From positions 62,001 to 126,000 of IMG/VR virus record IMGVR_UViG_3300032294_002797: a stretch of DNA of 64,000 nt. The stretch is one strand, 5' to 3'. Position 1 is the first letter of the stretch. Every line of letters starts with the position of its first letter. The translations under genes and the position numbers were made by a program. Shown in pieces: positions 1,187-37,266 of the stretch. The notes below the pieces were generated by a model. It was not told the DNA's origin. It saw only the letters and a list, made by a program, of their open reading frames with translations, and did not search any database.

Positions 1187-1188
1187 TT

Positions 1189-2490: not shown

Positions 2491-2532
2491 CAAAGGGGTA
2501 TATACTTATATTATATCTTTCTGGAGTATTAA

Positions 2533-9848: not shown

Positions 9849-9885
9849 TAACCAATAACACACAATATTTTCTGGAGATTAAATT

Positions 9886-10944: not shown

Positions 10945-10978
10945 TAATTAGTTACAGAGATTCAAAAGGAAGGACACG

Positions 10979-11128
10979 ATGGAAGAAATTTTTACTATAA
11001 TAGGTAAAATGTATGTAGATATTGTTCAGTCTCAAAAAGCTATTACAGAATTACAAAAACAACTAGATGATAAAGATAAAGAGATATCTAGTTTACAAAA
11101 TTCTATTATAGCTAAGCAGACAGAATAA
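10979..11128 (+). CDS. Small 49-aa coiled-coil protein (not in the ORF track)
   Basis: MEEIFTIIGKMYVDIVQSQKAITELQKQLDDKDKEISSLQNSIIAKQTE; AAGGAAGGA RBS; fills the gap; stop 1 nt before the next GTG. Confidence 0.75.
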   Translation: MEEIFTIIGKMYVDIVQSQKAITELQKQLDDKDKEISSLQNSIIAKQTE

Positions 11129-11129
11129 T

Positions 11130-12176
11130 GTGAAAACAATAGAACTAGAAAAATTTGTAAATAGAATTTTATCTGGTAAGCAACTTATAGAACACAAAGA
11201 TGTGTTATACGAGTTGAGGTCTGCTAGTATAGATATAAGACTTCAGGCTAATCTATTATACGACAATACATACGAAGACAATTTATATTCTAGTTCATTT
11301 ATTTTAGAAGATAATATAGAAGACTTATTATTTGAATTAGACATAGTATACCCAGCATATAAAAAAGATATGGAAATGCTGGAGAAAAAAATTGAAAATA
11401 TTAAGGTAGATTTATACTATCATTTTTTTGATAATACTAAGAAAACTAAATATAGAAAAGAATTAGCTTCTACTAGAACCAGATATAATGAGTTATTTAA
11501 TCTATCTCATAGTTTAGATTTTTTAACTTTAGAAAATTATTGCGCTAATATTAAAAACGAATTTATTATTAGTAATACATTATATATTTATCAAACTAAT
11601 AATTTAATATTTTATAACAATAATAATTATCAGCTATTTAATCATTTAATTCATAAGATTAGCTCTAATATTATAGATATATCCACGTTAAAAGCTCTTG
11701 CTCGTAGCGACTATTGGCGTAATTATTATGCTATTAATAAAAATCATTTATTTCCATATAGTATTATAGATTTTAATGAAGAACAAAAGGCTATTCTTAG
11801 TATATCATTAATGTATGATAGAGTATATGAACATCCAGAGTGTCCTGAAAAAGAAATTATAGAGGATGACGATGCTCTTGAGGGATGGATGATTCATAAC
11901 CAAAGAGAAAATAAGAAACAAAAACAGGAAAAGAGTGTAAATAATATATTGGGATCTGATCGCATGAAAAAAGCTAACGAAGTTTTTCTCATGGCTGATT
12001 CAGCAGCTCAAAGAGATGATATTTTAAAATTGAATAGTCCGGAAAATCTCTTGAAAAGACAAAATAAAGTTAGTACGGTATTGAATGCAGGAACTATCAA
12101 AGACGCGGATTTACCGGATGTGAAACAAAACATTAGAGATCAGCTCAAAGAATTAAATTTTAATAGGAAAAAATAA
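11130..12176 (+). CDS. Hypothetical protein, tail assembly chaperone region
   Basis: 348-aa helical ORF (GTG start) between tail tube and TMP. Confidence 0.55.
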   Translation: MKTIELEKFVNRILSGKQLIEHKDVLYELRSASIDIRLQANLLYDNTYEDNLYSSSFILEDNIEDLLFELDIVYPAYKKDMEMLEKKIENIKVDLYYHFFDNTKKTKYRKELASTRTRYNELFNLSHSLDFLTLENYCANIKNEFIISNTLYIYQTNNLIFYNNNNYQLFNHLIHKISSNIIDISTLKALARSDYWRNYYAINKNHLFPYSIIDFNEEQKAILSISLMYDRVYEHPECPEKEIIEDDDALEGWMIHNQRENKKQKQEKSVNNILGSDRMKKANEVFLMADSAAQRDDILKLNSPENLLKRQNKVSTVLNAGTIKDADLPDVKQNIRDQLKELNFNRKK

Positions 12177-12190
12177 TAAGGAATAATACT

Positions 12191-12499
12191 ATGACAGATA
12201 CTGAACGACTGATATTTCATCTTAAAAAAAGAGTAGAAACAACAATGATAGGAGCATTAAGCAAGTTTGAAAATACTTTTGGATTTTTGTGGGGGCAAGA
12301 TATTGAAAATGAAGATAACCTTACCTCGGAACAAATAGAATTTTCTGATATGTGGGAAAGAACTAGAAATCAGATTCTAAACCAAGGAAATGCTCAGATC
12401 AGAAATCTTGAAGATGATTTTTATAAGTATGGTGGATTTTTTAAGCAAAATTTCAATTATTCTTTTAGAGTACCAAAAGATAATACAAAAAATAATTAA
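12191..12499 (+). CDS. Hypothetical 102-aa protein, chaperone region
   Basis: Intact ORF with AAGGA RBS. Confidence 0.65.
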   Translation: MTDTERLIFHLKKRVETTMIGALSKFENTFGFLWGQDIENEDNLTSEQIEFSDMWERTRNQILNQGNAQIRNLEDDFYKYGGFFKQNFNYSFRVPKDNTKNN

Positions 12500-12522
12500 C
12501 ATAGAAGAAAGGACAGTATAAT

Positions 12523-13410
12523 ATGAAAACTGAGGATTTTAAAGTTGTGGTTGGTGAAGAGACGAAAACATTTATGGTGAGGTCGCCCTCTTTAACGGAT
12601 CAAAGAGAAGCTCAGAAAGTATATAATCATGCTTTTACAGACGCTATTAAAAGCAAGAGTGTTGTAAGAGCCAAAATGGATGATCTACTCGAAGAGCAAG
12701 GCTTATGGAACGAAGATAAGCAAAAAGAATACAATGATTTGCAAAAAGAATTATTAGAAGGCGAAAGAAAACTAGCCAAGGGCGGTTTTGCTCTTAGTGA
12801 AGCTAAAAAAATGGCCATTAAGATGAGAGAAGTACGAGGTAAGATTAGAGAATTAATTAGTGTTAGGACTTCCCTAGACAATCATAGTGCCGAAGGTCAA
12901 GCTGATAATGCTAGATTTAATTATTTGGTGAGTGTTTGTGTGGTGTATAAAGATAGTGATAAAAAGTATTTTGAGAGCCTGGAAGACTATATGGGTCGCA
13001 TAGATGATCCCGTAGCTCTTGCGGGAGCACAGAAATTGGCCAATATGATTTACGGTTTGGATAATGATTTTGAGAAGAATTTGCCCGAGAATAAGTTTTT
13101 ACGTAAATATAAATTTGTTAATGACAATTTAAGATTTATAGATAAGCAAGGTAGAACTGTAGATGGCGAAGGAAGATTAGTAGATGAAAATGGTAGGTAC
13201 ATTAATGACAACGGAGAGTTCATTGATAAAGATGGTAATAGAGTAGATGCAGATGGAGAGTACTTAGTTGATAGTCAGCCATTTTTGGATGACAACGGCA
13301 ATCCAGTAATTTTAGATGAGGAAACTAAAAAAAGTTTAGAAACCAAAGAACCTACCAATGAAGCAACTCCTGCAGCATCAGTATCAGAGGGAAATAAATC
13401 AACTACATAA
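12523..13410 (+). CDS. Putative tail assembly chaperone with 7-aa D-x-x-G repeats
   Basis: Directly upstream of the TMP; helical N-terminus; repeats IDKQGRT/VDGEGRL/VDENGRY/INDNGEF/IDKDGNR/VDADGEY. Confidence 0.55.
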   Translation: MKTEDFKVVVGEETKTFMVRSPSLTDQREAQKVYNHAFTDAIKSKSVVRAKMDDLLEEQGLWNEDKQKEYNDLQKELLEGERKLAKGGFALSEAKKMAIKMREVRGKIRELISVRTSLDNHSAEGQADNARFNYLVSVCVVYKDSDKKYFESLEDYMGRIDDPVALAGAQKLANMIYGLDNDFEKNLPENKFLRKYKFVNDNLRFIDKQGRTVDGEGRLVDENGRYINDNGEFIDKDGNRVDADGEYLVDSQPFLDDNGNPVILDEETKKSLETKEPTNEATPAASVSEGNKSTT

Positions 13411-13494: not shown

Positions 13495-16400
13495 ATGGCT
13501 AGAGGATTTAATCTTACAGCAGAAATCAATCTCAGAGGTCCGTCTAATATTAGGCAAATAACGTCTAATATTCGTAGACAGCTAGGTAATATCAATGCTA
13601 ATATCAATTTAAATATAGATAGAAATGCATCTAGAACAATTACTCAAGTCAATAATAATCTAAGAGTATTAACACAAACTTTAGGAGCTACGACAACAGC
13701 TGCGACAAATGCTACTACAGCATTTAATAATTTGGCGGCTGCGATGAGAGCGGTTGGAAATGTGAATTTGCCCGCAACCATCAGTACTCCTTTGGTTAGA
13801 ACAGCCGGCGCCGCCAATAACGCCAGCAGAGCCATTGCGCAAGCCAGAACAGAATTTGAGGATTTCGGTCGTCAAGCAGGACTAGCCGTACGACGTTTTG
13901 CTGCGTTCGCTTCTGTAACATCTGTTATTTACGGCGTTACAAACGCTCTGGCCAAAGGTGTTCAACAGTATATAGAATTTGATAGACAAATCGTTAGATT
14001 GTCACAAGTTACTAATGAAAGCAGAGAATCATTATCTGCTATGGTACAAGAGATAACAAAATTAGCTACAAATTTTGGCGTCTCATCATCGGATATTTCT
14101 CAGGTTGCTGTAACATTGGCGCAAGCTGGTTTAACAGCTAAAGATACGAGAATCGCGCTAGAAGCATTAGCTAAAAGTGCTTTGGCCCCATCTTTTGATA
14201 GCTTATCAGATACTGTAGAAGGCAGTATCGCGCTTATGAGACAGTTCGGCATTAGCGCTGGACAGCTAGAAAATGCTTTAGGTAGTGTAAATTCTGTTGC
14301 TGCGGCTTTTGCCGTAGAAGCCGGAGATATTATTACTGCTATACAAAGAACTGGTGGTGTATTTGCTGCTGCTAGTAAAGGTGTCAGTGAAGGCACAGAT
14401 GCGTTAAATGAATTTATTGCAGTATTTACTAGTGTTCGTGCGACTACTCGCGAAAGTGCTGAAACTATCGCCACTGGATTAAGAACTATTTTTACTCGTA
14501 TTCAAAGAGGAGATACAGTAGAAGCCTTAAAAGAATTCGGAGTTACTCTCACAGACTTAGAAGGTAAATTCGTTGGGCCCTACGAAGCTGTGCGCAGACT
14601 CAGCGAAGGATTAAGTAGACTAGATCCCAGAGATTTAAAATTTAGTAGCATAGTAGAAGAACTTGGTGGATTCAGACAAATCGGTAAAGTGCTTCCGTTA
14701 ATCCAACAGTTTTCCACCGCTCAAGAAGCTCTGAAAATTGCACAACAAGGTCAAGGCTCTCTTGCGATAGATGCGGCTAAAGGTCAGATGGCACTGGCGG
14801 TTCAAATACAAAAAGTAAGAGAAGAATTTAGTGCTTTAGTTAGATCTCTAGGAGATAGTAAGGGTTTTCAAACTTTAGTGAGACTTGGTTTGGATTTAGC
14901 CAGCGCACTAATTAAAGTAGCTGATGCAACTAAAGGTGTTTTGCCATTAATAGCTATTATGGGTGCTTTTAGAGGAGCTAGTGCCCTCACTCAATTTGCT
15001 GGTGGTTTTGGTGGAGGTTTTAGGGGTAATCGTCAACGAGCCAGAGACGGAGGTGTTATAGGTTTTGCTAGAGGAGGATTGGTTCCCGGCTCAGGAGATT
15101 CTGATAGCGTCAATGCTAGATTAACTCCTGGTGAGTTTGTAATGAGAAAGAGTGCGGTTAGAAGTATCGGTGCTGACAATTTAAGCAGCATGAATCGTGG
15201 AGGAGGTATAAAAAAATTACGAGAAGGAGGATATACTGTTAGAGAGCTTGCTGATAGTCAGAGAACTATCATAAATAACTATTTATATCCACGTAACAAA
15301 AACTCTAACTTAGAATTAAATGATAAAGTTAATGCTCAAATTATTAGAGTTAAAGAGAAACCGCTCACTGATGCAGAGATACGTGAGATCAAAGGTGCAT
15401 ATCCTACGTTAACTGGAAAATTAAAGACAAAAATAAAAGATCCTAAGAATAGAAAATTATTAGTAGAATCTCAGCGACCAACCTATCAAGGACCTGAATC
15501 AGATTCTATAGATGGTCTAGAGTATTCTCGTGCAGAAAAAGCCTGGGCTACTAAGTATGAGGAAATAATCAGGAAAAGACATAATCTTGAAGCAGCTAAT
15601 AAAGACAATCCCAATTATCCTGTAGACACCGTATCATCTCGTAACGTATGGGGGGAAGTAAAATTTAAAACTACCAAAGAACCAAAACGAGCTTTAATAG
15701 CTAAATTGTTGGCTAAAAAATTATTAGATAGATCAGTTAATAGGTTTTTTAAAGAAAATTCTTCGGACCAAGTTGACGGATCCATAGAAACAGACCCGCT
15801 TGGTCGTAATACTGTCAATCTAGGCAATCTTGAATACTATGGAGGAGATACAGGTCCTGGATTAGAATCTCATAAAAAGCAATTTTATAGGAAATTAAGA
15901 TCTGGAGGTATTGTTCAAAAATTTAAAGAAGGGGGTGAAACCCTTACTCTTGAAAAAGCAAGAGGCATGAGTAGAAAAGATATCCTAGATATTTTATCTG
16001 GCAGAAAAGGTGGCATAAGTACAACAGAAAGAGAAGTTGGAGTTAGTTCAGGTGAGATATACACAATACTAGGACAAAGAAATCCAGATGCAAAAACACA
16101 AGGACTTAAAGAAGCTATTCTTCAAAAAGCTGTTACAGCAAACAATAGGCAATTAGGAGCAGCAAAAGCTCAGATAACTAAATTACAGAATAATAATCTA
16201 GAAGTTGCCGCAGCAGGCTTATTTGGATCGAAATTTGCCGATCAAAATATGGATATCGAATCTCCGTCACTTTCTCAGTCCGCAAAGGTTAGAGTTATTA
16301 GCGGAATAATGGATAGTAAAATAGCTTCTTCTTTTAGCTCTATTGTATCAGAAACAACAGATAAATTAACCACGAGATTAGCAGAGGTAGCCACAACAGG

Positions 16401-19400
16401 CGATATACTAGCAAAACTTGGGCTAGGTAAAGAACTTAATACGGATTTTGACCGAACACTAGTTACTGGAGCCGACAAGATATTATCCGATCCAGGCAAA
16501 CCAGTGTTTTCGGAGTTTAGTGACCCAAATAAAGTATCTGCAGCATTACAGGGAGCAGAATTAACTTATCTTGGATCATCTTTAGTAGAGTTGATAAAAC
16601 AAAGAAAAGATTTATTACAATATATACGAGTGGTGACGGCTAGACCAGAATCGACTTTGGGTCTTATACAAGGATTTTTAGCCAGTAAAGATCTACCCAT
16701 ACCACGATCTCAATTTAAAGGCTTTGGTGGCGAAAATATTAGTGCAGATGAAATTGCCGAATTAAAGGCTGCATTTTTGAATCCAGATTCATTATTTGTT
16801 GATGATGATCCGCGTAATATAGCAGCAGCCAAAAAACGATCTAATGAAGGTATCACTAGTTATTTATACGGAACTGGCAAAAGTTTACCAAATTCGCAAG
16901 CACAGGGAGATATAGAGGGGTTATTACTAGAACAGGTTGTACAAAAACTTGGTGGTCCCGGAGCCCTCAAAGGCATGGGATTTGATTTTCCCAATGGGTT
17001 AGGCGATGCTGCTAAATATTTTGGACTACCTGATGATATACCCACAGATGTTAAGAGAACTATTAGTGGGCCATCCACAATCAAAGATAATATCGTTACA
17101 TATTTAAAGAACGTTATGGGCTATGCTGGTGGTGGGACTGTACCTGCTATGGTTAGTAATGGTGAAGCTTATGTTCCTCCAGCTATGGCTAAAAAAATTG
17201 GTTATGGGAAACTCCATAAAATGAATCAGGCTGATCGAAATGGGATGAATAGTTTTGCGAGTGGAGGGATGAGCATATTTAAAGGATCGGGCACTGGAAC
17301 CAGTGATAGTATTGGTCCTATAGGATTGCCTGTTGGCAGCTTTATCTTAAGAGAAAAAGCCACGAAGGCTTTGGGGTTGAATAGCGGAGGCAGGGTACAG
17401 AAATTCTTATTCGGAGGCAGAAGCAGAGGGCCAGCAGCAAGACCCGATGCTATTTCTGTAGATACAATAGGAGCGAGTAATACTGCTGTCAGATCTCTAG
17501 GAGACCTAGCTACAGTACTTAATGATTTAGGAGTTGCATCCTCTAGATCCTCTCAATTATTGAGTCGTGGATATCAGGCCACGGCAGCAGAAGCACAAAG
17601 AGCATATGAGGCCGATCTAGTTATGGCTCGCGCAGCCGGTGCTAGTGCAGATGTATTATACGATCTAGAACAAGCTTTAATTAGAACCAGACAAGAAGCA
17701 GAAGCAGAAGTAGCAGTAATGCAATCTTTAGCAAACATGAGTGGAGTAGAATTGCAAGATACTCTAAGCGACATGGAAGATGAATTAAGAAGATTGACGG
17801 ACGCCGCTAGGAATGCCGCGGCCGCTGCTGGACTAACCGGAGAGGAACTAGAAACAGAAGTTAGAGCAGGAGCTGGAGATCGTCGAAGACAAGCTTTCGA
17901 AACTGTTGCGGCCTCTGGAACTGGTCCACTTCGTGCCCTTGGTGGAGGAACTGGTTTAGATTTAGCTGCTATTGGCGCTACTGGAGATGATCTGGGTAGG
18001 GTTATTAATAATTTGATGAGAGACGCAGAAACTCTAGAACAGATGAATATGCGATATACTCAAAATCGCAGAGAAGAAGTAGCACAAGCCGCTATGGCTG
18101 CCGGTAATATAGCTAGAGCAGCTAGAATACGAGCTGGTAGTGAAAGAGATGTAGAAGAGACTATACAGAGAGAAATAAGAGCTAGAACAACAGCAGTAGA
18201 ACAAAATGCTAGAAGTACTGGAGCTAGGGGTCCAGATGAAGCTAGAGAATTTAATAGGCAAAATAATATGCTAGCTTCTTTTGCCGTTATGACCGTTGGG
18301 AATATTATTGCTGATACTATCAATGCTAAATCTAGCGCCACGGAAGCTGGTGTTGCTGGAGGTATCAGAGGAGGAACTCAGGCTTTTGCATATGCAAATC
18401 AGATTAGTGGAGAATTAACTAATTTTGCAGATGGTCTTAGTCGTACGGGGAATAGATTTGCTGGCCTAGCCAGTAATATTGCTAGATTTGCTGGAAGAGT
18501 TCAAATTTTTGCTGTGCTAGGAGAAGCAGCTATACAAGCATATAATGGGATTAGACAATTTGGTATAGAATTAGAAAAAAATAGAGTTGAGCAAGCTCTT
18601 AGTGGCCTTACCGAACAATTTGATAAGTTAAATAAAGATCTGAATCAGTTAGATCTTAGAAATGCTATTCAGTCAAATATTATAGATGCTAGCAGATCTT
18701 CGGAAAGACTAAGATCACAAACATTAGATACGGCCTCCGCTGGATGGATCAATGGTATAGATGTTTTCATATCATCTCTACAAAATAGTGAAACCAATAA
18801 TACCAATAGGAGGGCTGCTTTAAGATCACAAGTATTGGAAAAAGAAGGTATTATGGAATATATCAACACTAGTTTTGGAGGTGCTGATACTTATGCTGCC
18901 AAAGCAGCAAAATATAGTGGACAGCAAGCTCTAGAATCTAGTCAATCCTTTAAGCCAGTAGCTGATAATATTAATCAATTAATTTCTGCCCGTATTAGAG
19001 GAGGAGAAAATATTGGAGATATTCTTGGCGGACCGGAATTTAAAGATTTTGCTACATCCTTAGTTTATGCTGATAGTGCTTTAAATAAGCATATTCGTGA
19101 GATAGAATTATCTACTAGATATACAGAAGAAGAGAAAAAAGCTCGTATAGATGAGATTATTAGTATACAAGGAGCTAATAAAATTCGTACGCAGGCCGCA
19201 ATTGCCCAGAGAGAAAAAGATCAAAGAGAATTAGGCACAGTAGCTTCTGTATATACAAGATCATTAAAGAGAATGTTTACTAATATGGAACAGGCTATAA
19301 ATGCTGCTGCATATTCATTAAAACAAATGACGGACAATATAGATTTAAATGTTAGCGCCCTACAAGGACAAGCCAAAGTAGGTTCAGTTGATTTACAAAC

Positions 19401-22400
19401 ATCTAATATTATACAAAATCCACGAGCCTATAATCCCGGAGTAAGATCATCTGCTCAGGCATCTGCCTCTTCGTTATTTGGTACAAGAGCACCAGAAATG
19501 GCGCAGCTTATGAATCTTGGAGAAACAGTAGAAAATACTGTTATGTCTACTATCAATAAAACATTAGAAGACAAAGGTCCAGATGCCTCTAATGAAGCTA
19601 TAGCCAGAGCTGTAGATAAAAGCGTACGAGACGAACTCAGTGGATTAGGATTACCTCCGGAGCTAGCGGATAAATTAGCTAAAGAAGTTGGTGATACATT
19701 AGTAGATTTAAGAAAATCTGGCGACGAAAAAGTTGATTTTGCCAAGCTTTCCGAAAAACTAGGATCGTTGTCTAGCGTTATAGATACAGCAAAAGATGCA
19801 CAGCAAGCAGCTATCAAAGCTTTAGAGAATTATCAGAATGTTTTGAATGCTTATGCTAATAATATTAATCGTATTATTGACCTGGAAACCAGTGCTAGAG
19901 ATAAATTTAATAAATCTGTCAATATCGCTGCTGATGGTAGTACCGCTTTATCTAAAGCTCTTGGCAGAACCATCACTGTCGCAGATGCTTTTGCTAAAAG
20001 AGATGCTTCTATTGCTAGACAAACAGGTGGTCTAACTGATCCAACGGATATCTTTAATAAGATCTTAAGTCTGAATAATAATAGAGATATTTTACAATCA
20101 TCTAGTAGAGAAGCGGCTGATAAAGGTCCTGCTGGTATTCAAGATTTTATCAAATTTAATAGCGAACTTAAGAATACTAATATTGCTTTAAGAGAAAATA
20201 GAGCTGCTTTAGAGGATATGGCTACTAATACAGAAAAAGCAAGCTCAGCTATGGATGCTATACAAGAAGCTCAACAAAAAGCAGCTGGTAGAATTGGCTT
20301 CTTAGAAAAAGTAGTTACCAGTACTCCTGATGAATTAGATTCGTTAAATCAATCTTTGTATAGACTGCAAAGAAATATGAATGGTCAACAAAATACTATT
20401 CAGAATAGCATAGGTGCTCAAAAGGCATATAGGGATGCATTAAATCAGGGAGCTTCTGCTGCTGAAGCTATGAGAGCTGCTCAAACAGCTTTTGCCAACG
20501 AAAGAAAGGAAACCCTAGGTACTCTTCAAGATATTATGCCATTTTTAGGAGACAATCAACAAGCAAATAATATTAAAGCAAATGTTCTAGAGACAATGTT
20601 AGCCGAGTCCGGCATGGGAGTTTCTCCGCTATTCCAACAGATACTCAATACTCTACGAAATCCCGAACAAGATCCCGCCACAGCTGCTGCTATACAATAT
20701 TATAATCAGTCAATAGCGGAACAGTCAACAGCTACTAGATTATTAGGACAATTAGATCAACAACTAGCCAATGATATAGCAGTACAAAATAGTAAACTAA
20801 TAGTAGACGGCTTAACTAAAACAGTATTAACTTTCCAGAATAATGAGCTTAGAGATATAGCAGACAAAGTCAATACAATGGTTTCTATTATGCAGAAAGC
20901 TCCTGGCGCTGGAGGTTTAGCTAGCGGAGGCATGGTTTATGCTGCTGGTGGTCAATTTATCAATTTTCAACCAAAAGGTACAGATACTGTTCCTGCAATG
21001 CTAACACCGGGAGAGTTTGTTGTCAATAGAGCCGCTACTCAAGCGAATCTTCCGTTATTAAAATCTATTAATAATGGATATTCCAGAGGAGGTAAAGTAT
21101 CTTATTATGCTGCTGGTGGTTTTGTTACCAATTGGGGCAGTCAAACTAGTATGGATGAATTTGGCATGATGAGTGATAAAGAGATTATTGATCCTAGTGT
21201 AGAAGCTAATAGAGCCATTTGGAGTGCTGGATACAAGCAGAATATTAGATTATTACCTAGTTATTATACTTTAGATTTTTCTGATGATAATACTACGATC
21301 CCATCACCGGGAGCAGACCCCGATAGTCCTAACTTTAACTTAGATCAAATTAAACCAACAAGTGGTAAAGTTAGAGTTGGCTCAGCAGTTGGTATTTCCA
21401 GGGTTGGAGATGATCAGTATGCATATATAGACAACCAAGGTGCTATCGACGCTAGTAGCGATATGCCTATTATCAAGGCTGCTGAGACAAATTTATATTT
21501 GGGTTTAGACAAGTTCAAATCAACAAATTTTGCTCAGTCCAAGGCTACAGAATACAAAGATCGATTTCGATCATTTGAAGCATTAGACTCTACTCTTCAT
21601 AAATCTATAAGTATGGATCCTATTGCTTTTGCTGATGATCTTCCAAAATTAAGTGATTTTACTTCTAATGCTAATGAATGGAATCCTACACTAGCTGGTA
21701 AATCATACGGTATAGCGTTTGATACTTCTACAGAGATTAGACCAACTGATAAAGATGTGTCTGCTGCGCCTTCTTTTAAAATTTGGTACTATAAAAGATC
21801 CCCATTGAATTATGCGGGCTGGGCTCCAGGACTAGCGATGGGAGTTTCTGTAAAGCAGCCAAATTTCGATATTGGCACTCCATATTCCTCAAATGATGGA
21901 TTCGATAGCAAAAGCTGGGTCGTTTTCGGATCTGGTAAGTATAAATCCGCTATGTATCCTGACTTAGAAAAAATGAATGGTGTTATTACCGGCAAAGGAA
22001 TAAAAGACGCTAATACTATTAGTTCAGAGAACTATGAGCTATATAAAAATACAGTAGATTTTTTAAGTGGAGCTTCCACATATAAGGATACCGGCGGCCT
22101 TGGTGCAGCTTTACAACAAAAATTATCTAGTTTATATAATGGTCTAGCACAATTTATAACTCTTGATCAAAATGAAATAGCCCCCTTAGATGAGCTAGTC
22201 AAATTGAATGCTACTAGCGCAATTATTGCACAACAATCTTTAGAGCAACAATTTAAAGATGGCCTTCAGTTTATAGATACTAATGCTGCTAAATATAATA
22301 AAGTAAAAATAGGATTGACTGGTGCCAAACCCGCCATCAAAAATCCAGATTTCTTAGCCTCTAAGCCTTTTGATATAGAAAATACAGCAACAAAAATATC

Positions 22401-25400
22401 CAAGTCTTTTCCGTTCATGATAAATGGAAATATGCGTGAGATTCTAGGTAAAGATTTTGAGGATGTCGCTGCTCAACAAGCTGCTGCTACTAAAGGCAAA
22501 GTACATAGCAGATTACTACCGGTTGACGAATTAAAGGTCAATTTACCAGTGAATATACAGGGTAAACAACCTCAATTATCTATACCAATAGCTTATGAAG
22601 AATATACCGGAGAACTATTTGATCCATCAACTAAGAATTTTGATGGTAAGCCTTTTACCACTTTGTTGCCTAATAATATTTCAGAAACTCTTTTTCAAAA
22701 TTTGGACGAATCACGAAAAAGATTATTTACAACTAAAAAATATACAGTACCAGATATTTTAAAAGCATCGAAACTAGATGATCCTACTAATCCGATTTTT
22801 ACTGATATAATAGACTTATTCAAGTTTCAAACTAATAATGATCCTAATGTAGATGCACAGGCTAAAAAAGTAGCAGCAAATCTTAATTTAGTATTCGATC
22901 ATCCTCAAAATTCTTTAATTAAAAATGTAGGCTTAGCTGGAGACGGCGGGGTAGATGTGTTCTCTGCTATGAGCGATGAGCCCACCACAGTTAATGTAGG
23001 AGAATTTTTACTCAAAAAATTCCAAGAGTTTAGAGGCCAGCTAGCTTCTGGAGCAAATAAAGTAGATCCAATTATGCCGAAAGGCGCTGTATTTTCTGAT
23101 GCTGAACTTCCTCAAGCAACTGCCGCACTGATTCGTGGATCGATGGCATTATTTGGGGGCCTAAAATTACCGGGTGCTCCTTATGGATGGCTTTCTAAAT
23201 CTGGTGGTCCTCAAGCTCTCAGAGCTGCTATATCAGGTAACCCCGTAGCAGCAGCGCAGCATATGGCAGGAGTATTAAATCAAGCAGGAGCTTATGTCTC
23301 GCAATTACAAAATAGGGCTCCTAATGTATCAGCTTATAATGCTCTAGATAATGCTATGACTATGATTAGTGGAGCAGCTAATGCTTTTGGTTCCTTAGCT
23401 GGTGGGGATACTAGTCTGTTAAAGCAGTTTTATGAGAATAAGGTGCCTATCGCCGCAGTATTTCGTAGTTTAGGAGCTGCGTCTAGATTTGGTAAAATAT
23501 CGGGTATGAAATTGAGTCCGGATTGGCAAAATATATTAGGTAATCAGCTTCAGGGATCCAAATTGAAAACTGTTGGACGAGATGGTTCATTATCAGACGC
23601 CACGTTAGTTAGTGCGATACCAGAAAACGCCACTGTTTCTGATTTAGTCAAAGTAATTTTTAATCCATATAATGAATTTGCTGGTAAAGATATACGAAAA
23701 GGTCTTATTCAAAAATTTGGTGATGATATATTCAATCTGAGAGGACCAAATCGCATGCCGTATTTTGATCCTCAAACCTTATCTTTTATTAGAACGGGAC
23801 TTTATCGTTTGATGGATTGGTATGGAGGAAAAGGAAATTGGGTAGGACAAGACTATTTCTTTGATGAGAAAAACGAACCAGATAATGCTCTTCGTATGGC
23901 TAATTTTGCTCAATCTTTAAAAACAGATGGGTCTCAATTCTATAAAGACGCTATGGAAGCCCATACTCTATTTGGTTTGTCTAATGCTTTTGGAGCTTTA
24001 CCAACAGATCAATGGTTTATGTCTCGTGGCGCTGTATTGCCACAAAAGAAGGCGGCTGGCGGAGTTATCTATGCTCAAACGGGTGGAAACTTAGTCAACT
24101 TTAAACCCCAGGGCACTGATACAGTTCCCGCGATGTTAACCCCAGGAGAATTTGTTGTTAATAGACGAGCAACACAAAAAAATCTACCACTACTACGATC
24201 CTTGAATAGTGGTGGATCTACAGGATATAGTCAAGGAGGGGTGGTTTATTTAAGCGGCGGAAGTGCCGACCCTGTTGTAGACGTTACCGGCAATGGTGTT
24301 GGAAACATATCGCCAAAAGTTATTCAACAAGCATTGATTACAGGGATTAGAAATGACCAATTATTAGCCGGTAATGCATCTAGAGAAGATACTTTGGACA
24401 TGACGGTGAGAGATTATACTAGACGAACGGTTTTCAAGGACCATCTTTTAAATCTTGGTGTTACTCCAGAACAGCTTAAAATAGCAGAAGATGATCTACG
24501 AGAAAGATCGGAAACCGGCGTAGACTTACCGGCAGGTGATATGTATGATAGACAAATTGCGGGTACTTTAATTAGACAAGGAATATCACAAGATATTATT
24601 GATAAAGCTAAAAAAGCTAATTATGAAGCACAAAATAAGACATTTCGTATACAAAAAGATTTGTTTGATAAGAAAAAAATGGCATTAGCAAGATCTAATG
24701 TTTTTGGTGTTGAATATTTTATGGGAAACTTAAGCATTTTTGATGCATCTCGTGGGGCACGTAAAGATAAAAAACTATTAGAAGAGCGTTTTAAATTAAC
24801 AGATATGACCAAAGATAATACTGTTAATGTACTAGATTTATTAACATGGTTATCTAGAAATCCAGATGTTCAATCGGCTGCTAATCCATATATCAGCTCA
24901 TCCGATGCCTGGATGCCCAAAGGCTTTTTATCTGGTAGTGGCGGTGTATTTTCTGATACTACTCGTAAACAAGACGAAAGAGCCGAAATAGAACCGCATA
25001 TTCGTACTCTCTCTCCTCAACTTGATACATGGGCGAATGTTCTCAGGTATAGACTAGATTCTGCCCGACAAGCCCAAGATCTAAGAGATGCAGAAGCTAA
25101 ATTAGCACAAAATCAAACAAAGGAAAAACAAGGGGTTGAAGCTTGGGGTAGCGGTGGAGCCGGAGGGATAGATCCATCTGAAATTAATACGCTAAGAGCC
25201 AAACAAAAAGAATGGGGACAGAAAAGATTACAGTATATGGAAAGACTAAATACTTTAGAAGGTCTTATTTCTTTAAGAGCTATCGGCGGTACAGGAGTGG
25301 GGTCTTTGGAGGAACTTGTCGCCAATGAACAAGGTATGTCTACAAGTATTAGAGATAATGAACAATTAGGTTTGAGAGAAGATATTATAGATGAAGGCAA

Positions 25401-28400
25401 TAGAGAAGGTTTGCGTAAAGGAGCGAGAAATTTAGTCATGACAGCAGCAATAGGCGCTGCTTCACCATTTTTATTGCCCGCTGGAATAGCAGCTGCTGGA
25501 GGAGCAGCGGTATTAACTATCGGAGGTTCGCTTGGAGCAATGTATTTGGCTGATGCTGTTGAAGAAAAGAATTATCAAAATCTAAAAAATACCGATCCTA
25601 AAGAATTTGCTCGTCAACAGTTATTAAGAAGTCAAAATTCGTATCAGGAAGCTGCTGCTTCTATGGAAAATATTGTAGACATTGCTGATATGGCTTTGGG
25701 TATTGGCGCCGGCGCTGTAAACACAAAGGGATTATTTAAATATAGATTTTTTCAAGAAGCTGCAGACGGTCAGCCTGTCAAGATAAAAAATACTGCTGTT
25801 AGTCGTTCAGCAGAAGCTAAGGACATAGCAGATAAAAGTAAAGCAGCTCTCAAAGACATGTCCGATGATGCAAAAGCTAAACCAAAAACAGCTGATGATG
25901 TTAAAACTGATACTGAAGCTAAAGCAAAAACGAAAACCGAGCAACCGGCAACACCAGAAAAACCCATTAAATTTAAGAGTCCAAAAGTAGCAGAAGCCTG
26001 GAATAATGCCGTAGCCGAAGCTAGAGCCAAATATAATAAGTCTATAAATGAATTTTCAGACCAACAGATGAAAGATTATTTTGAGACCGGACCAGGCTCA
26101 GCTGCTAAACAACAAGTTAATGCTCAAATAGAACAATTGAAACTTGATGCTGGTGCGACAAAGATGAACGATGCTGATGCTTGGAATACCATAGCAACAC
26201 AGTATCCCGATAGATTTGGACAATTTGCAGATGATCTGAAGAAAAATGGATATATGATAGATGATGATGGAAATATTATATTTGGTCCTAATGCTAGAGG
26301 TATTGTAGATTCTGATCCCAATATGGCCGGGGCTTTTGAAAATGCTCGTACAAAAGCTAGACAACAGGGTATAGACGAGGCCGCTGATAAATTAAAAATT
26401 AAAAAAGGTAGTAAAGATTATGATGATTTAGTAAAAGCATATGATGATGATATTAGTATTAAAGGAAGAACATGGAGAGGATATGTCAAAGATAAATGGG
26501 CTGCTGTCACTAAGTCCAAATGGGCAAGATTAGCAGCGGGTGGTGCCGCATTACTGGCTGCATGGCAGGCTTGGATGATGCTTAATGCAAATAAACAAAA
26601 TCAAAAACCCCCAGGAGGTGCTCCAACAATTCCACCAGCTCCTGGTACTGGAGGTTCTGGTGGTGGTGGCGGCGGCGGTAGCGGTGGAGGTAACACACCA
26701 ACTGTTCCCCCTCTGGAGCCCACTGTTGTCGATCCTGCTGGTAAAACTGTTAAAAAGATAGAAACTCCTAATTATTATGATGAATTAACATATAAAGAAT
26801 ATGTAAGTAGACAACTAGTGGCCGGTCATGCTCCACCAGAGCCGATCAAAAAGTTATTTACTACGGCCGCTGTTTATGGCTATCAGACAGATGCTACAGG
26901 CAAGAGAATTAGAGGTAGTAATAGAAGAACCACAGCATATGATCAAAGAGATACTAGTGGCTTAAATAAAGGTATTGGTTTAGAAGGAGATGAAACCGGC
27001 GGCGCTATGCGCGCTAAAAGTCCTGTTGGAGGCAGAACTGTTTCGTCTCAAACCCACACTACTACCGCTCCATTTGTCCCTAGTTCTACAACATATGATG
27101 GAAAGGGCGGGTTTAATTATAAGCCAGGCGGTGCTCCTCAAGATACTAGAAATTTATCAGAAGAAGATAAAGCTAGAATAAAAAAACAAGGAGGATTCTT
27201 ACCATCCGGCCAGTTCGGTACTGACCAAAATAATAAAGAAGGTAATGCGGGTATACGTCAATCTGCGGGGGCCGCACCAGCAATACCATTTGGTGTTCGA
27301 CCCGTGCCTCCAGAAAAAAAACAGGGAGCCGCAGATGAATTTGTAGAGTCTGCAAGTAGTACAGACGTTGCTAAACAAATGGAAATAGCAAATCGACCAA
27401 TGAGTGTTCGCGGAAAAACAGTTATGTGGGGTAGAACAAGCCCTCTTACTCAATATAAAACAGCTTATGCATTCTGGAGACGTAAACTAGGAGAATATAA
27501 TTATTTTAATAGTATAGCTTATCAAAAGAAAGATAGATGGAAAAAAGGATTTGGTAAATATGATAGTGTCTTAAAACAAGAAAAAGAAGCACAAGGATTG
27601 TCTAGGGGTGGTGTGGTATATGCTCAAAATGGCATGCTTATTCCTTATCAACCTAGGGGTACTGATACTGTTCCGGCTATGTTAACGCCGGGTGAATTTG
27701 TGGTTAATAGAGCCGCCACACAAAAACACTTGCCTTTATTAAAAACTCTCAACCGTAGCAAAGGCGGAACTGTTTCATATTTATCAGCCGGAGGACAATC
27801 TGCTCCCGCGGCTCCTCCTTTGTTTGTATCAGACAAGAATGCTGCAAAACTCAGTAATGTTGGTAAAGATGTAAAAAATGTAGAGATTCTTGGCAAGGAT
27901 ATCAAATCATTATTAATTAATAATCCTGTTCCTAAAAAATTAGATGAATCAACAGGTAAAATTTTAGATTGTTGTAAAGATAGTCAAAATAAAAACCAAA
28001 AAAATGCAGAAAATATTTTAACGCTACAACTACAAAATAGAACTAATATGGGTATTAGTACAAAACTCATTATGGGCGCCATAGAATATACTGGAATGAA
28101 AGCCGAGGCCGCGATAGCCAAAGCTTCAGTTGAAAAACCAGCTTGGGTAGACGAGGAAGTTAATAGCATACAATCAAAAATAATTGTAATGATTAGTCAG
28201 AGCATAGACTCGGCGAAACAATCAGTAACCGACACCATTGGGGCGGCCAAAGATGCTCTTGCGGGTATGCTCGGAGGCGCCGCTGCACCTGCTGGTGCTG
28301 TTCCTGGTCCCGCTGCGGCCGGTGCCGCCGCTGCTCCTGCGGCGGGAGCCGCTGGTTTGTACAACGGAGGTATGGTATATGCTAGTAATGGAACTCTTAT

Positions 28401-29670
28401 AAATTATCAACCAAGAGGCACAGATACCGTACCAGCAATGTTGACTCCTGGAGAATTTGTAGTTAATGCTAGAGCAACAAAAAAACATTTACCTCTATTG
28501 AGTGCTATTAATGATGGAAATTATAAAGCTGATGGTGGTATTATCACACCGAGTTATTATGCGAACGGGGGTCACAACCCAGATCATAAGCAATGGGCTG
28601 AAGCGAGACAAAGACACGAAGAACGTCAAGAACAAACTCAAATATTAAGCGGATATAAAAAATTTGGAAATAGAGCGCCATTATTTTTTGAAATAGATAA
28701 TCAGATAAAGCAAGCTCGTAATCTGTTTGATGCACTTGATGCAAACGCTATTAACGAAGATCTAACTAAAGATCAAGTTATAACTATGGTTGAAGATAAA
28801 ATAGCAAAAGCATCGTCCGATCAAAAGGCTGCTCTCATAAATGCAGAAAGAGCAACGGCTCAACAACGCTTTCAGTATTTATTAGGTGTCGTTCAAAGAT
28901 CTTCTGTAGCTATACAATCTCTAACAGGTAATGCTAGAAATTATGAGTCGGTACAAAATCCTGGATTTACTTACTATGATATTCTAGATGCTCAAATAAA
29001 GCATGGCCAGGCAGAAGGAAAAGCGCTATACGAAGGATGGTTAGAATTAAATAAAGAAGTGGGCTCAGTATCTTTACCGGGCTCAACAGCGGTAGGTTTA
29101 CCAGCACCAGGAGCAGGAGGAGCGAATCCGCCTGTTGGTAAACAGTACGGAGGATTAATTTATGCTAATAATGGCATGTTAATTCCTTATCAGCCCAAAG
29201 GAACTGATACTGTGCCTGCTATGCTCACTCCTGGTGAATTTGTAGTTAATAGAAATGCTACCAGGAATAATCTTGCTTTATTACAAGATATTAATAGTAA
29301 TAGATTTAATAATGGTGGTCCTGTAGTATATAAGCAAGCGGGCGGTCCTATTATGTATAGGCAATATGGCGGAATGACGGATGAATCTGGCGGAGGCACT
29401 AGTGGTGTATCTAATAGTGGCGGACCTGATTTTGATAAATTAGCCCAATTTACCGCCACCTTTGATAGATTTATTGGCCAATTACAAAAACTTAATATTC
29501 CACCACAAATTAATTTAACTCTAACACAACAGAAGCCATTGGAGATTAATGTTAACGGAGCAGAAGCACTACAAAAACTATTGGAAGGTCCATTAGGAGA
29601 TATTGTAAGAGGAAATGTCAATACAGCACTTAATCAAAATCGCGTAGGTAACGAAGAACCACCACAATAA
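13495..29670 (+). CDS. Giant modular tail tape-measure protein (5391 aa) with repeat-bounded cargo domains
   Basis: N-terminal TMP core (FDRQIVRLSQVT..ATNFGVSSSDISQVAVTLAQAG..); long Ala-rich helices; canonical position; eight copies of a GTDTVPAMLTPGEFVVN-type module; embedded HAD and PD-(D/E)xK-like motifs. Confidence 0.9.
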   Translation: MARGFNLTAEINLRGPSNIRQITSNIRRQLGNINANINLNIDRNASRTITQVNNNLRVLTQTLGATTTAATNATTAFNNLAAAMRAVGNVNLPATISTPLVRTAGAANNASRAIAQARTEFEDFGRQAGLAVRRFAAFASVTSVIYGVTNALAKGVQQYIEFDRQIVRLSQVTNESRESLSAMVQEITKLATNFGVSSSDISQVAVTLAQAGLTAKDTRIALEALAKSALAPSFDSLSDTVEGSIALMRQFGISAGQLENALGSVNSVAAAFAVEAGDIITAIQRTGGVFAAASKGVSEGTDALNEFIAVFTSVRATTRESAETIATGLRTIFTRIQRGDTVEALKEFGVTLTDLEGKFVGPYEAVRRLSEGLSRLDPRDLKFSSIVEELGGFRQIGKVLPLIQQFSTAQEALKIAQQGQGSLAIDAAKGQMALAVQIQKVREEFSALVRSLGDSKGFQTLVRLGLDLASALIKVADATKGVLPLIAIMGAFRGASALTQFAGGFGGGFRGNRQRARDGGVIGFARGGLVPGSGDSDSVNARLTPGEFVMRKSAVRSIGADNLSSMNRGGGIKKLREGGYTVRELADSQRTIINNYLYPRNKNSNLELNDKVNAQIIRVKEKPLTDAEIREIKGAYPTLTGKLKTKIKDPKNRKLLVESQRPTYQGPESDSIDGLEYSRAEKAWATKYEEIIRKRHNLEAANKDNPNYPVDTVSSRNVWGEVKFKTTKEPKRALIAKLLAKKLLDRSVNRFFKENSSDQVDGSIETDPLGRNTVNLGNLEYYGGDTGPGLESHKKQFYRKLRSGGIVQKFKEGGETLTLEKARGMSRKDILDILSGRKGGISTTEREVGVSSGEIYTILGQRNPDAKTQGLKEAILQKAVTANNRQLGAAKAQITKLQNNNLEVAAAGLFGSKFADQNMDIESPSLSQSAKVRVISGIMDSKIASSFSSIVSETTDKLTTRLAEVATTGDILAKLGLGKELNTDFDRTLVTGADKILSDPGKPVFSEFSDPNKVSAALQGAELTYLGSSLVELIKQRKDLLQYIRVVTARPESTLGLIQGFLASKDLPIPRSQFKGFGGENISADEIAELKAAFLNPDSLFVDDDPRNIAAAKKRSNEGITSYLYGTGKSLPNSQAQGDIEGLLLEQVVQKLGGPGALKGMGFDFPNGLGDAAKYFGLPDDIPTDVKRTISGPSTIKDNIVTYLKNVMGYAGGGTVPAMVSNGEAYVPPAMAKKIGYGKLHKMNQADRNGMNSFASGGMSIFKGSGTGTSDSIGPIGLPVGSFILREKATKALGLNSGGRVQKFLFGGRSRGPAARPDAISVDTIGASNTAVRSLGDLATVLNDLGVASSRSSQLLSRGYQATAAEAQRAYEADLVMARAAGASADVLYDLEQALIRTRQEAEAEVAVMQSLANMSGVELQDTLSDMEDELRRLTDAARNAAAAAGLTGEELETEVRAGAGDRRRQAFETVAASGTGPLRALGGGTGLDLAAIGATGDDLGRVINNLMRDAETLEQMNMRYTQNRREEVAQAAMAAGNIARAARIRAGSERDVEETIQREIRARTTAVEQNARSTGARGPDEAREFNRQNNMLASFAVMTVGNIIADTINAKSSATEAGVAGGIRGGTQAFAYANQISGELTNFADGLSRTGNRFAGLASNIARFAGRVQIFAVLGEAAIQAYNGIRQFGIELEKNRVEQALSGLTEQFDKLNKDLNQLDLRNAIQSNIIDASRSSERLRSQTLDTASAGWINGIDVFISSLQNSETNNTNRRAALRSQVLEKEGIMEYINTSFGGADTYAAKAAKYSGQQALESSQSFKPVADNINQLISARIRGGENIGDILGGPEFKDFATSLVYADSALNKHIREIELSTRYTEEEKKARIDEIISIQGANKIRTQAAIAQREKDQRELGTVASVYTRSLKRMFTNMEQAINAAAYSLKQMTDNIDLNVSALQGQAKVGSVDLQTSNIIQNPRAYNPGVRSSAQASASSLFGTRAPEMAQLMNLGETVENTVMSTINKTLEDKGPDASNEAIARAVDKSVRDELSGLGLPPELADKLAKEVGDTLVDLRKSGDEKVDFAKLSEKLGSLSSVIDTAKDAQQAAIKALENYQNVLNAYANNINRIIDLETSARDKFNKSVNIAADGSTALSKALGRTITVADAFAKRDASIARQTGGLTDPTDIFNKILSLNNNRDILQSSSREAADKGPAGIQDFIKFNSELKNTNIALRENRAALEDMATNTEKASSAMDAIQEAQQKAAGRIGFLEKVVTSTPDELDSLNQSLYRLQRNMNGQQNTIQNSIGAQKAYRDALNQGASAAEAMRAAQTAFANERKETLGTLQDIMPFLGDNQQANNIKANVLETMLAESGMGVSPLFQQILNTLRNPEQDPATAAAIQYYNQSIAEQSTATRLLGQLDQQLANDIAVQNSKLIVDGLTKTVLTFQNNELRDIADKVNTMVSIMQKAPGAGGLASGGMVYAAGGQFINFQPKGTDTVPAMLTPGEFVVNRAATQANLPLLKSINNGYSRGGKVSYYAAGGFVTNWGSQTSMDEFGMMSDKEIIDPSVEANRAIWSAGYKQNIRLLPSYYTLDFSDDNTTIPSPGADPDSPNFNLDQIKPTSGKVRVGSAVGISRVGDDQYAYIDNQGAIDASSDMPIIKAAETNLYLGLDKFKSTNFAQSKATEYKDRFRSFEALDSTLHKSISMDPIAFADDLPKLSDFTSNANEWNPTLAGKSYGIAFDTSTEIRPTDKDVSAAPSFKIWYYKRSPLNYAGWAPGLAMGVSVKQPNFDIGTPYSSNDGFDSKSWVVFGSGKYKSAMYPDLEKMNGVITGKGIKDANTISSENYELYKNTVDFLSGASTYKDTGGLGAALQQKLSSLYNGLAQFITLDQNEIAPLDELVKLNATSAIIAQQSLEQQFKDGLQFIDTNAAKYNKVKIGLTGAKPAIKNPDFLASKPFDIENTATKISKSFPFMINGNMREILGKDFEDVAAQQAAATKGKVHSRLLPVDELKVNLPVNIQGKQPQLSIPIAYEEYTGELFDPSTKNFDGKPFTTLLPNNISETLFQNLDESRKRLFTTKKYTVPDILKASKLDDPTNPIFTDIIDLFKFQTNNDPNVDAQAKKVAANLNLVFDHPQNSLIKNVGLAGDGGVDVFSAMSDEPTTVNVGEFLLKKFQEFRGQLASGANKVDPIMPKGAVFSDAELPQATAALIRGSMALFGGLKLPGAPYGWLSKSGGPQALRAAISGNPVAAAQHMAGVLNQAGAYVSQLQNRAPNVSAYNALDNAMTMISGAANAFGSLAGGDTSLLKQFYENKVPIAAVFRSLGAASRFGKISGMKLSPDWQNILGNQLQGSKLKTVGRDGSLSDATLVSAIPENATVSDLVKVIFNPYNEFAGKDIRKGLIQKFGDDIFNLRGPNRMPYFDPQTLSFIRTGLYRLMDWYGGKGNWVGQDYFFDEKNEPDNALRMANFAQSLKTDGSQFYKDAMEAHTLFGLSNAFGALPTDQWFMSRGAVLPQKKAAGGVIYAQTGGNLVNFKPQGTDTVPAMLTPGEFVVNRRATQKNLPLLRSLNSGGSTGYSQGGVVYLSGGSADPVVDVTGNGVGNISPKVIQQALITGIRNDQLLAGNASREDTLDMTVRDYTRRTVFKDHLLNLGVTPEQLKIAEDDLRERSETGVDLPAGDMYDRQIAGTLIRQGISQDIIDKAKKANYEAQNKTFRIQKDLFDKKKMALARSNVFGVEYFMGNLSIFDASRGARKDKKLLEERFKLTDMTKDNTVNVLDLLTWLSRNPDVQSAANPYISSSDAWMPKGFLSGSGGVFSDTTRKQDERAEIEPHIRTLSPQLDTWANVLRYRLDSARQAQDLRDAEAKLAQNQTKEKQGVEAWGSGGAGGIDPSEINTLRAKQKEWGQKRLQYMERLNTLEGLISLRAIGGTGVGSLEELVANEQGMSTSIRDNEQLGLREDIIDEGNREGLRKGARNLVMTAAIGAASPFLLPAGIAAAGGAAVLTIGGSLGAMYLADAVEEKNYQNLKNTDPKEFARQQLLRSQNSYQEAAASMENIVDIADMALGIGAGAVNTKGLFKYRFFQEAADGQPVKIKNTAVSRSAEAKDIADKSKAALKDMSDDAKAKPKTADDVKTDTEAKAKTKTEQPATPEKPIKFKSPKVAEAWNNAVAEARAKYNKSINEFSDQQMKDYFETGPGSAAKQQVNAQIEQLKLDAGATKMNDADAWNTIATQYPDRFGQFADDLKKNGYMIDDDGNIIFGPNARGIVDSDPNMAGAFENARTKARQQGIDEAADKLKIKKGSKDYDDLVKAYDDDISIKGRTWRGYVKDKWAAVTKSKWARLAAGGAALLAAWQAWMMLNANKQNQKPPGGAPTIPPAPGTGGSGGGGGGGSGGGNTPTVPPLEPTVVDPAGKTVKKIETPNYYDELTYKEYVSRQLVAGHAPPEPIKKLFTTAAVYGYQTDATGKRIRGSNRRTTAYDQRDTSGLNKGIGLEGDETGGAMRAKSPVGGRTVSSQTHTTTAPFVPSSTTYDGKGGFNYKPGGAPQDTRNLSEEDKARIKKQGGFLPSGQFGTDQNNKEGNAGIRQSAGAAPAIPFGVRPVPPEKKQGAADEFVESASSTDVAKQMEIANRPMSVRGKTVMWGRTSPLTQYKTAYAFWRRKLGEYNYFNSIAYQKKDRWKKGFGKYDSVLKQEKEAQGLSRGGVVYAQNGMLIPYQPRGTDTVPAMLTPGEFVVNRAATQKHLPLLKTLNRSKGGTVSYLSAGGQSAPAAPPLFVSDKNAAKLSNVGKDVKNVEILGKDIKSLLINNPVPKKLDESTGKILDCCKDSQNKNQKNAENILTLQLQNRTNMGISTKLIMGAIEYTGMKAEAAIAKASVEKPAWVDEEVNSIQSKIIVMISQSIDSAKQSVTDTIGAAKDALAGMLGGAAAPAGAVPGPAAAGAAAAPAAGAAGLYNGGMVYASNGTLINYQPRGTDTVPAMLTPGEFVVNARATKKHLPLLSAINDGNYKADGGIITPSYYANGGHNPDHKQWAEARQRHEERQEQTQILSGYKKFGNRAPLFFEIDNQIKQARNLFDALDANAINEDLTKDQVITMVEDKIAKASSDQKAALINAERATAQQRFQYLLGVVQRSSVAIQSLTGNARNYESVQNPGFTYYDILDAQIKHGQAEGKALYEGWLELNKEVGSVSLPGSTAVGLPAPGAGGANPPVGKQYGGLIYANNGMLIPYQPKGTDTVPAMLTPGEFVVNRNATRNNLALLQDINSNRFNNGGPVVYKQAGGPIMYRQYGGMTDESGGGTSGVSNSGGPDFDKLAQFTATFDRFIGQLQKLNIPPQINLTLTQQKPLEINVNGAEALQKLLEGPLGDIVRGNVNTALNQNRVGNEEPPQ
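15088..29250 (+). repeat. Dispersed in-frame module repeats in the TMP
   Basis: Exact GTDTVPAMLTPGEFVVN at 20977, 24112, 27658, 28417 and 29200; degenerate copies at ~15088, ~17137 and ~17281. Confidence 0.95.
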
Positions 29671-34149: not shown

Positions 34150-34158
34150 GGATTAGAT

Positions 34159-35739: not shown

Positions 35740-35740
35740 T

Positions 35741-37252: not shown

Positions 37253-37266
37253 TAGGAATAATATTT

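Follow-up and report, generated by a model that had tools for sequence, protein, structure and literature searches.

The tape measure proteins (TMPs) of tailed phages are usually regarded as rulers or channel formers that carry, at most, a cell-wall hydrolase. The TMP of a siphophage is expelled when infection begins, and enzymatic modules can be part of it. Pb2 of phage T5 has a muralytic domain, and the TMP of mycobacteriophage TM4 reportedly contains a peptidoglycan-hydrolase motif. Our literature search returned no TMP described as having a nuclease domain. Polyvalent proteins are very large virion-associated polypeptides with enzymatic domains that are predicted to be injected with the DNA; they are presumably packaged in the head, and TMPs are not mentioned in the paper (Iyer et al. 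2017, PMC5512222). The Sle1-type effectors of actinobacterial contractile injection systems are TMP-related (Nagakubo et al. 2026, PMC13277306), and the prophage-like BtI1 of Bacillus thuringiensis has a staphylococcal-nuclease (SNase) domain fused to its baseplate hub (Hardies et al. 2007, PMC2147016). Here, we analyse a giant TMP encoded in a window of 64,000 nucleotides (nt; bases 62001-126000 of the 223,302-bp IMG/VR virus record IMGVR_UViG_3300032294_002797, which is rated 100% complete). On balance, we favour the reading that a set of residues near its N-terminus is the active-site signature of an unclassified, very divergent PD-(D/E)xK nuclease, which forms an exchangeable cassette of the TMP and is probably delivered at infection.

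The signature was proposed from the letters alone (hereafter, the sequence-only reading) as an E..PxD..ExK arrangement at positions 15480-15720 of the window. The peptides on which the proposal was based are present (K-Y-E-E-I-I from residue 687, nt 15553; W-G-E-V-K-F-K from residue 719, nt 15649). In addition, the D at 15625, the E at 15655, and the K at 15661 are exact and in frame, corresponding to D711, E721, and K723 of the TMP. The flagged interval lies inside the domain but is too narrow, as the conserved domain extends from 15238 to 15903 (Table 1). In an alignment of 22 cassette sequences with a mean column identity of 21%, the only invariant columns are D610, E689, P709, D711, K723, and K737; at position 721, each of the 22 has either E or D. 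The acidic residue of the first helix, the (P)D, and the (D/E)-x-K of a PD-(D/E)xK signature are all conserved in this alignment. By sequence, selection has retained exactly the residues of the E..PxD..ExK arrangement, along with D610 towards the N-terminus and K737 on the helix that follows.

AlphaFold2 supplied with this alignment yields a model with a predicted local distance difference test (pLDDT) score of 86.6 and a predicted template-modelling score of 0.83, in which 137 residues score at least 90. An earlier AlphaFold2 model from seven sequences had a pLDDT of 50.5 and was mostly low-confidence helix; its Foldseek matches were meaningless and were discarded. In the final model, the N-terminal part comprises a strand (residues 611-618, model residues 30-37) and three helices. 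The core comprises, in model numbering, helix 87-114, strands 118-119, 131-132, and 138-141, helix 150-163, and strand 192-201, where D711, E721, and K723 are model residues 130, 140, and 142, respectively. D711 is positioned immediately before its strand, and K723 directly follows the strand that holds E721. The helix with K737 is followed by a poorly modelled loop, a long strand (residues 773-782), and a final helix. The predicted core has the alpha-beta-beta-beta-alpha-beta order of PD-(D/E)xK proteins, with the catalytic-type residues on the expected elements. The sequence-only reading had made its proposal depend on a restriction-endonuclease-like predicted fold, and the core order of the model is canonical. 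Judging from this model, the cassette quite probably has the restriction-endonuclease fold.

The cassette sits in a protein that is, by its sequence matches, a TMP. The Pfam family PF10145 matches residues 186-379 (nt 14050-14631, E 3e-23), multiple PHROG TMP families match the first 570 of the 5,391 residues, and open reading frames (ORFs) farther upstream, at 20-7703, match PHROG tail-fibre and virion-structural families. Beyond PF10145, Pfam recognises no other domain in the protein. On the N-terminal side the cassette is bordered by a Gly-rich module (module 1, residues 519-581) and on the C-terminal side by a GG..QKF..GG linker (residues 803-814), so the borders named in the sequence-only reading are correct. 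Module 1 is similar to the C-terminal parts of PHROG TMP families. Its T-P-G-E-F-V element occurs in six copies, at residues 544, 2504, 3549, 4731, 4984, and 5245 (nt 15124, 21004, 24139, 27685, 28444, and 29227), and five of the six are near-identical over about 20 residues. Short linkers of the pattern GG-x-[VI]-x-[YQK]-x-x-x-GG are found at residues 569, 804, 1298, 2532, 4757, and 5274. By their sequence positions, these modules and linkers split the TMP into cassettes, and they may serve as recombination joints or processing sites.

Comparison with a close relative indicates that the cassette is exchangeable. The 5,416-residue TMP P0003 is 87.6% identical to the TMP of the window over the full length, with 90.4% identity over residues 1-581, 17% over residues 582-803, and 99.7% over residues 804-1400. 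The cassette and its borders are the only part that falls below 70% in a sliding window. The P0003 cassette belongs, as a distant member, to the family of the window's cassette and keeps F-E-E, Y-P-I-D, and D-A-K, as does the P0011 cassette, which is 49% identical to it. When the two cassette types are aligned with hhalign, the E-V-K of one corresponds to the D-A-K of the other, and the motif residues match. On this sequence evidence, the cassette has been exchanged between close relatives with sharp recombination borders. Swapping between such close relatives suggests a role in an arms race or conflict.

Homologues of the cassette are confined to giant TMPs of an uncultured phage clade, in which they occupy the same position. 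A word search with the whole TMP, limited to residues 575-830, found two TMPs, one of 7,372 residues with a cassette 44% identical and P0003, matched at the linker only. A word search with the isolated cassette, which covered only proteins of 119-378 residues, found no free-standing homologue. An exhaustive profile search of 1.84 billion representatives added two giant TMPs (5,479 and 5,503 residues) with the cassette at the same position and one 100-residue fragment, and a metagenome scan added one more member. A search of IMG/VR with the conserved TMP region that precedes the cassette gave 285 related loci, on contigs of up to about 240 kb; 80 of these loci were retained, including 57 distinct ones. 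Iterative hidden Markov model (HMM) searches over these relatives, at conservative thresholds, joined 16 first cassettes into one family that includes the P0003 type; a single locus (L043) matched both starting profiles. A third subgroup (L013, L068, and L084) joins by hhalign with a probability of 90% and an E of 1.6e-6, with the motif residues aligned. In total, 19 of the 57 distinct relatives carry the family, one cassette per TMP. Among 50,697 phage records, tblastn and blastn found no match to the cassette, and all that the N-terminus of the TMP resembles, with 22-26% identity, are generic TMP regions of SPbeta-like, Rhodococcus, and other phages; therefore, there is no cultured relative.

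A scan of genome contigs returned four TMP-related contigs in metagenome-assembled genomes (L085-L088), labelled Alphaproteobacteria, Proteobacteria, 'bacterium', and Thermoplasmatales. Their labels are mutually inconsistent, so they are probably mis-binned phage DNA, and no host is indicated. The isolate name of one of these genomes points to a lake sample. The scan also gave one weak match of 46 residues in a Gordonia genome (E 5e-7).

Across four structure libraries, the neighbours that span the domain are mostly PD-(D/E)xK nucleases, all with weak scores (Z at most 4.0 and template-modelling score, TM, at most 0.49 for these nucleases) and none of them significant. A second look at the Foldseek candidates finds restriction-endonuclease-fold nucleases in about 30 of 46 rows, including EcoO109I, FAN1, EcoRII, AvaII, MGME1, a VRR-NUC domain, a Cas4-family protein, and the endonucleases of influenza, arenavirus, and Thogoto virus. 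In the ESM Atlas, the cassette neighbours DUF6998/PDDEXK_16, RE_SinI, PDDEXK_16, YqaJ, and Mrr_cat clusters, with a TM by target reaching 0.49, and the BFVD matches, at E 0.25-2, are RecB-family, Cas4, Mrr, Hjc, and restriction endonucleases. By language-model features, the cassette of one relative (L068) lies close to Tox-REase-7 and PDDEXK_14 clusters with scores of 0.85-0.88, which, being below 0.9, is a lead only; the atlas feature search with the cassette of the window gave no usable match. The Foldseek check put forward with the sequence-only reading thus returns mostly restriction-endonuclease-fold nucleases, but with weak scores (best E in the PDB, 0.65).

Several observations weigh against a delivered PD-(D/E)xK nuclease. 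The bare motif P.D-x(5,30)-[DE]xK occurs twice in the TMP, compared with 2.3 +/- 1.6 times in 200 shuffled sequences. Between helix alpha-1 and the PD strand, the model has a strand of only two residues. The overall structural scores (Z at most 4.5, Foldseek E at least 0.25, TM below 0.5) fall where, according to the tools, unrelated folds commonly score. Pfam, PHROGs, and NCBIfam, scanned at lenient thresholds with each of the 22 members, returned no nuclease family, and HMMs of Hjc, Mrr_cat, DUF6998, and Tox-REase-7 (PF15649) found nothing at E 10 in the phage genome and four related records. Sequence searches of the PDB, one with a single sequence and two with profiles, turned up nothing beyond kinase noise and a marginal match to ribosomal protein L9. 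With regard to delivery, three folded 25-kDa domains should be too large for the lumen of an ordinary tail tube, so that the cassette probably travels unfolded, and a nuclease that is already active when made in late infection could put the DNA of the phage itself at risk.

A motif count equal to the shuffle expectation, and the mostly helical seven-sequence model, are what a chance motif within a non-globular helical spacer of the TMP would produce. The same residues are invariant in 22 sequences at 21% mean identity, indicating that a motif expected by chance is here a real signature. In addition, the model from the deeper alignment is confident and of mixed alpha/beta type, and the cassette has sharp recombination borders. 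A chance motif is therefore rejected as hardly credible on conservation, model, and borders, and not on the motif count.

The silence of the nuclease profiles and the weakness of all matches to nuclease structures leave room for a conserved domain of other fold or function, in which E/PxD/ExK mimics a nuclease site. One candidate is an L9-like strand-strand-helix RNA-binding unit, since residues 8-71 of L9 (E 0.017) are the only PDB sequence match of the family profile. The match is marginal, Lys-rich, and limited to 65 of 222 residues (family profile positions 95-159, TMP residues about 676-740), and it leaves E689, P709, and D610 unexplained. The match does not cover these three residues, and membership of the L9 N-terminal domain family was rejected; the similarity is probably compositional. 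Four structure libraries and the language-model search rank restriction-endonuclease-fold families first among the domain-spanning matches, and competing folds do not recur in the structure searches. We regard another fold as quite unlikely. The PD-(D/E)xK superfamily is known for families that escape sequence methods, so that the profile failure weakens membership without excluding it. The PD-(D/E)xK-like signature of the sequence-only reading is thus upheld by conservation and predicted core order, but not by profile similarity to curated families.

How a PD-(D/E)xK cassette in a TMP might act can be outlined. In phage 80-alpha, three TMP copies lie inside the tail, with their N-termini beneath the tail completion protein that caps the DNA end and their C-termini at the baseplate (bioRxiv 10.1101/2024.12.10.627806). 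Inside the tail tube, the cassette would probably be incompletely folded. The TMP would be ejected before the DNA at infection, and the cassette, 11-15% along the TMP from the N-terminus, would exit the tail late, just before the DNA. After release, the cassette would fold, E689, D711, and E721 would bind a divalent metal, and K723 (perhaps K737) would be the general or catalytic lysine. The folded cassette would then cut nucleic acid in the host, the likely targets being host or competitor DNA or RNA. We lean towards catalysis by the cassette; its action in the host after ejection is possible and rather less assured.

By the 80-alpha arrangement, the cassette is in the TMP part nearest the DNA. 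This location would also suit a restriction-endonuclease-like fold with a nucleic-acid-binding or virion-assembly role, for example, holding or processing the end of the phage DNA that leads in the upper tail, or setting the TMP in register with the tube. Structural modules of this kind would be in keeping with a second conserved E..DFP..D-x-K domain in 33 of the 57 relatives. However, derivatives of the fold that only bind usually lose some of the catalytic residues, and here solely residues of this type are invariant. An essential structural role is also hard to reconcile with the finding that two thirds of the related TMPs lack the cassette and have unrelated modules, including SNase, in its place. 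Therefore, we consider a binding or assembly role unlikely.

The second conserved domain is at residues 1110-1211 (16822-17127), reads G-x-L-L-E ... F-D-F-P-x-G-L-G ... P-T-D-x-K-R, and occurs once per full-length TMP. Its E..D part aligns with the cassette family by hhalign with a probability of 70%. Judging from the alignment, it may be a second, near-universal restriction-endonuclease-like module.

Different modules occupy the cassette slot in other relatives. In L036 (L036:3787-5400), the slot holds the Pfam domain SNase (PF00565, E 7.4e-6, 26.8 bits against a cut-off of 21). Nine more loci (L027, L029, L030, L032, L034, L040, L066, L067, and L078) have the SNase-type motifs D-G-D-[ST] and D-A-[FY]-E, with Y-G-R-P in three of the nine; the motifs are in the first slot in eight, and further downstream in L040. 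These nine are below Pfam significance and are called SNase-like on motifs only. The presence of two apparently unrelated nuclease types in one slot is the strongest contextual argument that the slot has a nuclease function. Walker-A-like motifs (G-x-x-G-x-G-K-[ST]) are found in TMP cassettes further downstream in L062, L078, and L083, which suggests NTPase or kinase cargo by motif; Pfam gives only faint STAND NTPase matches for L078 and L027.

SNase is typically a secreted, Ca-dependent enzyme. Its occurrence as an alternative cassette, and the fact that the reach of the TMP into the cell is unsettled for most siphophages, could speak for an active nuclease whose substrate is not cytoplasmic or not host DNA, such as envelope or periplasmic nucleic acid or the small nucleotides with which defence systems signal. 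PD-(D/E)xK enzymes, in contrast, are mostly intracellular DNA or RNA endonucleases, and we hold such a substrate to be improbable.

We compared the putative nuclease cassette with described systems. The nearest by predicted structure are FAN1/VRR-NUC, the type II enzymes PspGI, Ecl18kI, EcoRII, EcoO109I, MspI, and SinI, and Mrr, together with the cap-snatching endonucleases of influenza, arena- and bunyaviruses. As in PD-(D/E)xK nucleases, a helix-borne E is followed by P-x-D before a strand, (E/D)-x-K on the next strand, and then a helix and a strand. The invariant lysine on the following helix recalls the helix-borne Lys134 of influenza PA-N. Unlike PD-(D/E)xK nucleases, the cassette has no detectable sequence or profile similarity to curated families and adds three N-terminal helices and an N-terminal strand behind an invariant Asp, and its first core strand is very short; those nucleases stand alone or are joined to DNA-binding domains, whereas the cassette is part of a TMP. 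A catalytic module within a TMP is also found in TM4 and T5 Pb2, but the modules there are reported to attack the cell wall, whereas the cassette is nuclease-like, near the N-terminal end, and exchanged between close relatives. Tox-REase-7 (PF15649), a restriction-endonuclease-fold toxin family, provides the named clusters nearest to the L068 member (0.86-0.88, a lead only). It is the toxin domain of bacterial polymorphic toxin systems and is also a delivered nuclease module, but differs in that its HMM is silent in the four related phage records.

Polyvalent proteins share with the giant TMPs the placing of unrelated domains at an equivalent position, here restriction-endonuclease-like and SNase, but the scaffold here is a TMP with repeated Gly-rich linkers (PMC5512222). 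In domain content, the TMP of the window has one predicted nuclease and the second conserved domain, and its relatives have SNase and P-loop-motif cassettes. Sle1-type effectors likewise have a modular TMP-related scaffold with diverse exchangeable domains and are ejected from a tail-like machine, but they occur in Actinobacteria, in intracellular particles that resemble phage tails, rather than in phages, and their functional domain is C-terminal (PMC13277306). BtI1 likewise carries a nuclease on a tail protein in a lineage of roughly 200-kb phages; its SNase domain, which alternates with cell-wall hydrolases in relatives, parallels the SNase cassette of L036, but its carrier is a T4 gp27-like hub, not a TMP, and its nuclease fold is another (PMC2147016). 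What appears to be new is a family that profiles fail to see, within a known superfamily, together with its carrier and its arrangement.

Table 1 Positions in the window of the TMP gene, the cassette, its predicted elements, and its borders
Feature	Position (nt)	Strand	Basis
Giant TMP gene	13495..29670	+	Single open frame, 5,391 codons / 5,391 residues
Module 1, Gly-rich GG...TPGEF... unit (residues 519-581)	15049..15237	+	Upstream border of the cassette
Whole cassette domain (residues 582-803, ~220 residues), predicted restriction-endonuclease-like	15238..15903	+	TMP-only homologues, AlphaFold2 model
D610, invariant acidic residue immediately preceding the N-terminal strand	15322..15324	+	Alignment column
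Helix alpha-1 (residues 668-695), holds invariant E689 (nt 15559-15561)	15496..15579	+	Model helix 87-114; alignment
'PD' element, P709-x-D711, then short strand (residues 712-713)	15619..15633	+	Both invariant; model strand 131-132
'(D/E)xK' element, strand W-G-E-V then K (residues 719-723), E721 and K723	15649..15663	+	Model strand 138-141; alignment
Helix alpha-2 (residues 731-744), holds invariant K737 (nt 15703-15705)	15685..15726	+	Model; alignment
Long strand (residues 773-782, N-L-G-x-L motif)	15811..15840	+	Model strand 192-201; motif conserved in most members
Linker S-G-G-I-V-Q-K-F-K-E-G-G, pattern GG-x-V-Q-K-F-x-x-GG (residues 803-814)	15901..15936	+	Downstream border of the cassette

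The window has a GC content of 35%. The ORFs that immediately neighbour the TMP gene, at 8817-13410 and 29683-42594, have no PHROG match. Downstream of the TMP gene, very large ORFs of 1,488, 526, 526, 1,775, and 2,772 residues occupy 29683-50927; those tested have no PHROG match, and they presumably encode tail-tip or fibre proteins of unknown type. Two glycosyltransferase-like genes (57378-60187) and a DNA polymerase gene (60719-62398; PHROG 405, E 1.5e-98) are on the minus strand. Within the TMP, residues 3980-4019 (25432-25551) are strongly hydrophobic, with a Kyte-Doolittle mean above 1.6, and residues 4343-4365 (26521-26589) are hydrophobic by eye and below the Kyte-Doolittle threshold of 1.6; each is a candidate for a segment of the TMP that inserts into membranes. 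These stretches are followed by a run of Gly at 26644-26691. TMP size ranges from 4,533 to 7,372 residues in relatives (including P0002, P0004, and P0005). At the usual ruler scale of 1.5 Å per residue, TMPs of this range would correspond to tails of about 0.8-1.1 µm if the entire TMP measures length.

If the proposed nuclease reading is true, a nuclease family found only in TMPs would turn the lumen of the tail into a route by which enzymes directed against the host or its defences are delivered, and would add a PD-(D/E)xK family that current profile libraries miss. The point-mutable residues are a testable handle on the function of TMPs of 5,000-7,400 residues in a large group of uncultured phages. 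More tentatively, the giant TMPs of this uncultured clade, whose phages are of about 110-240 kb, might be modular injection scaffolds, whose swappable enzyme cassettes (the new restriction-endonuclease-fold family, SNase-like nucleases, P-loop enzymes, and others) would be arrayed between conserved Gly-rich linkers, threaded through the tail, and released into the host before the genome. Such scaffolds would be an equivalent, in the lumen of the tail, of polymorphic toxins and of the polyvalent proteins packaged in heads, and host-defence conflict would drive the replacement of cassettes.

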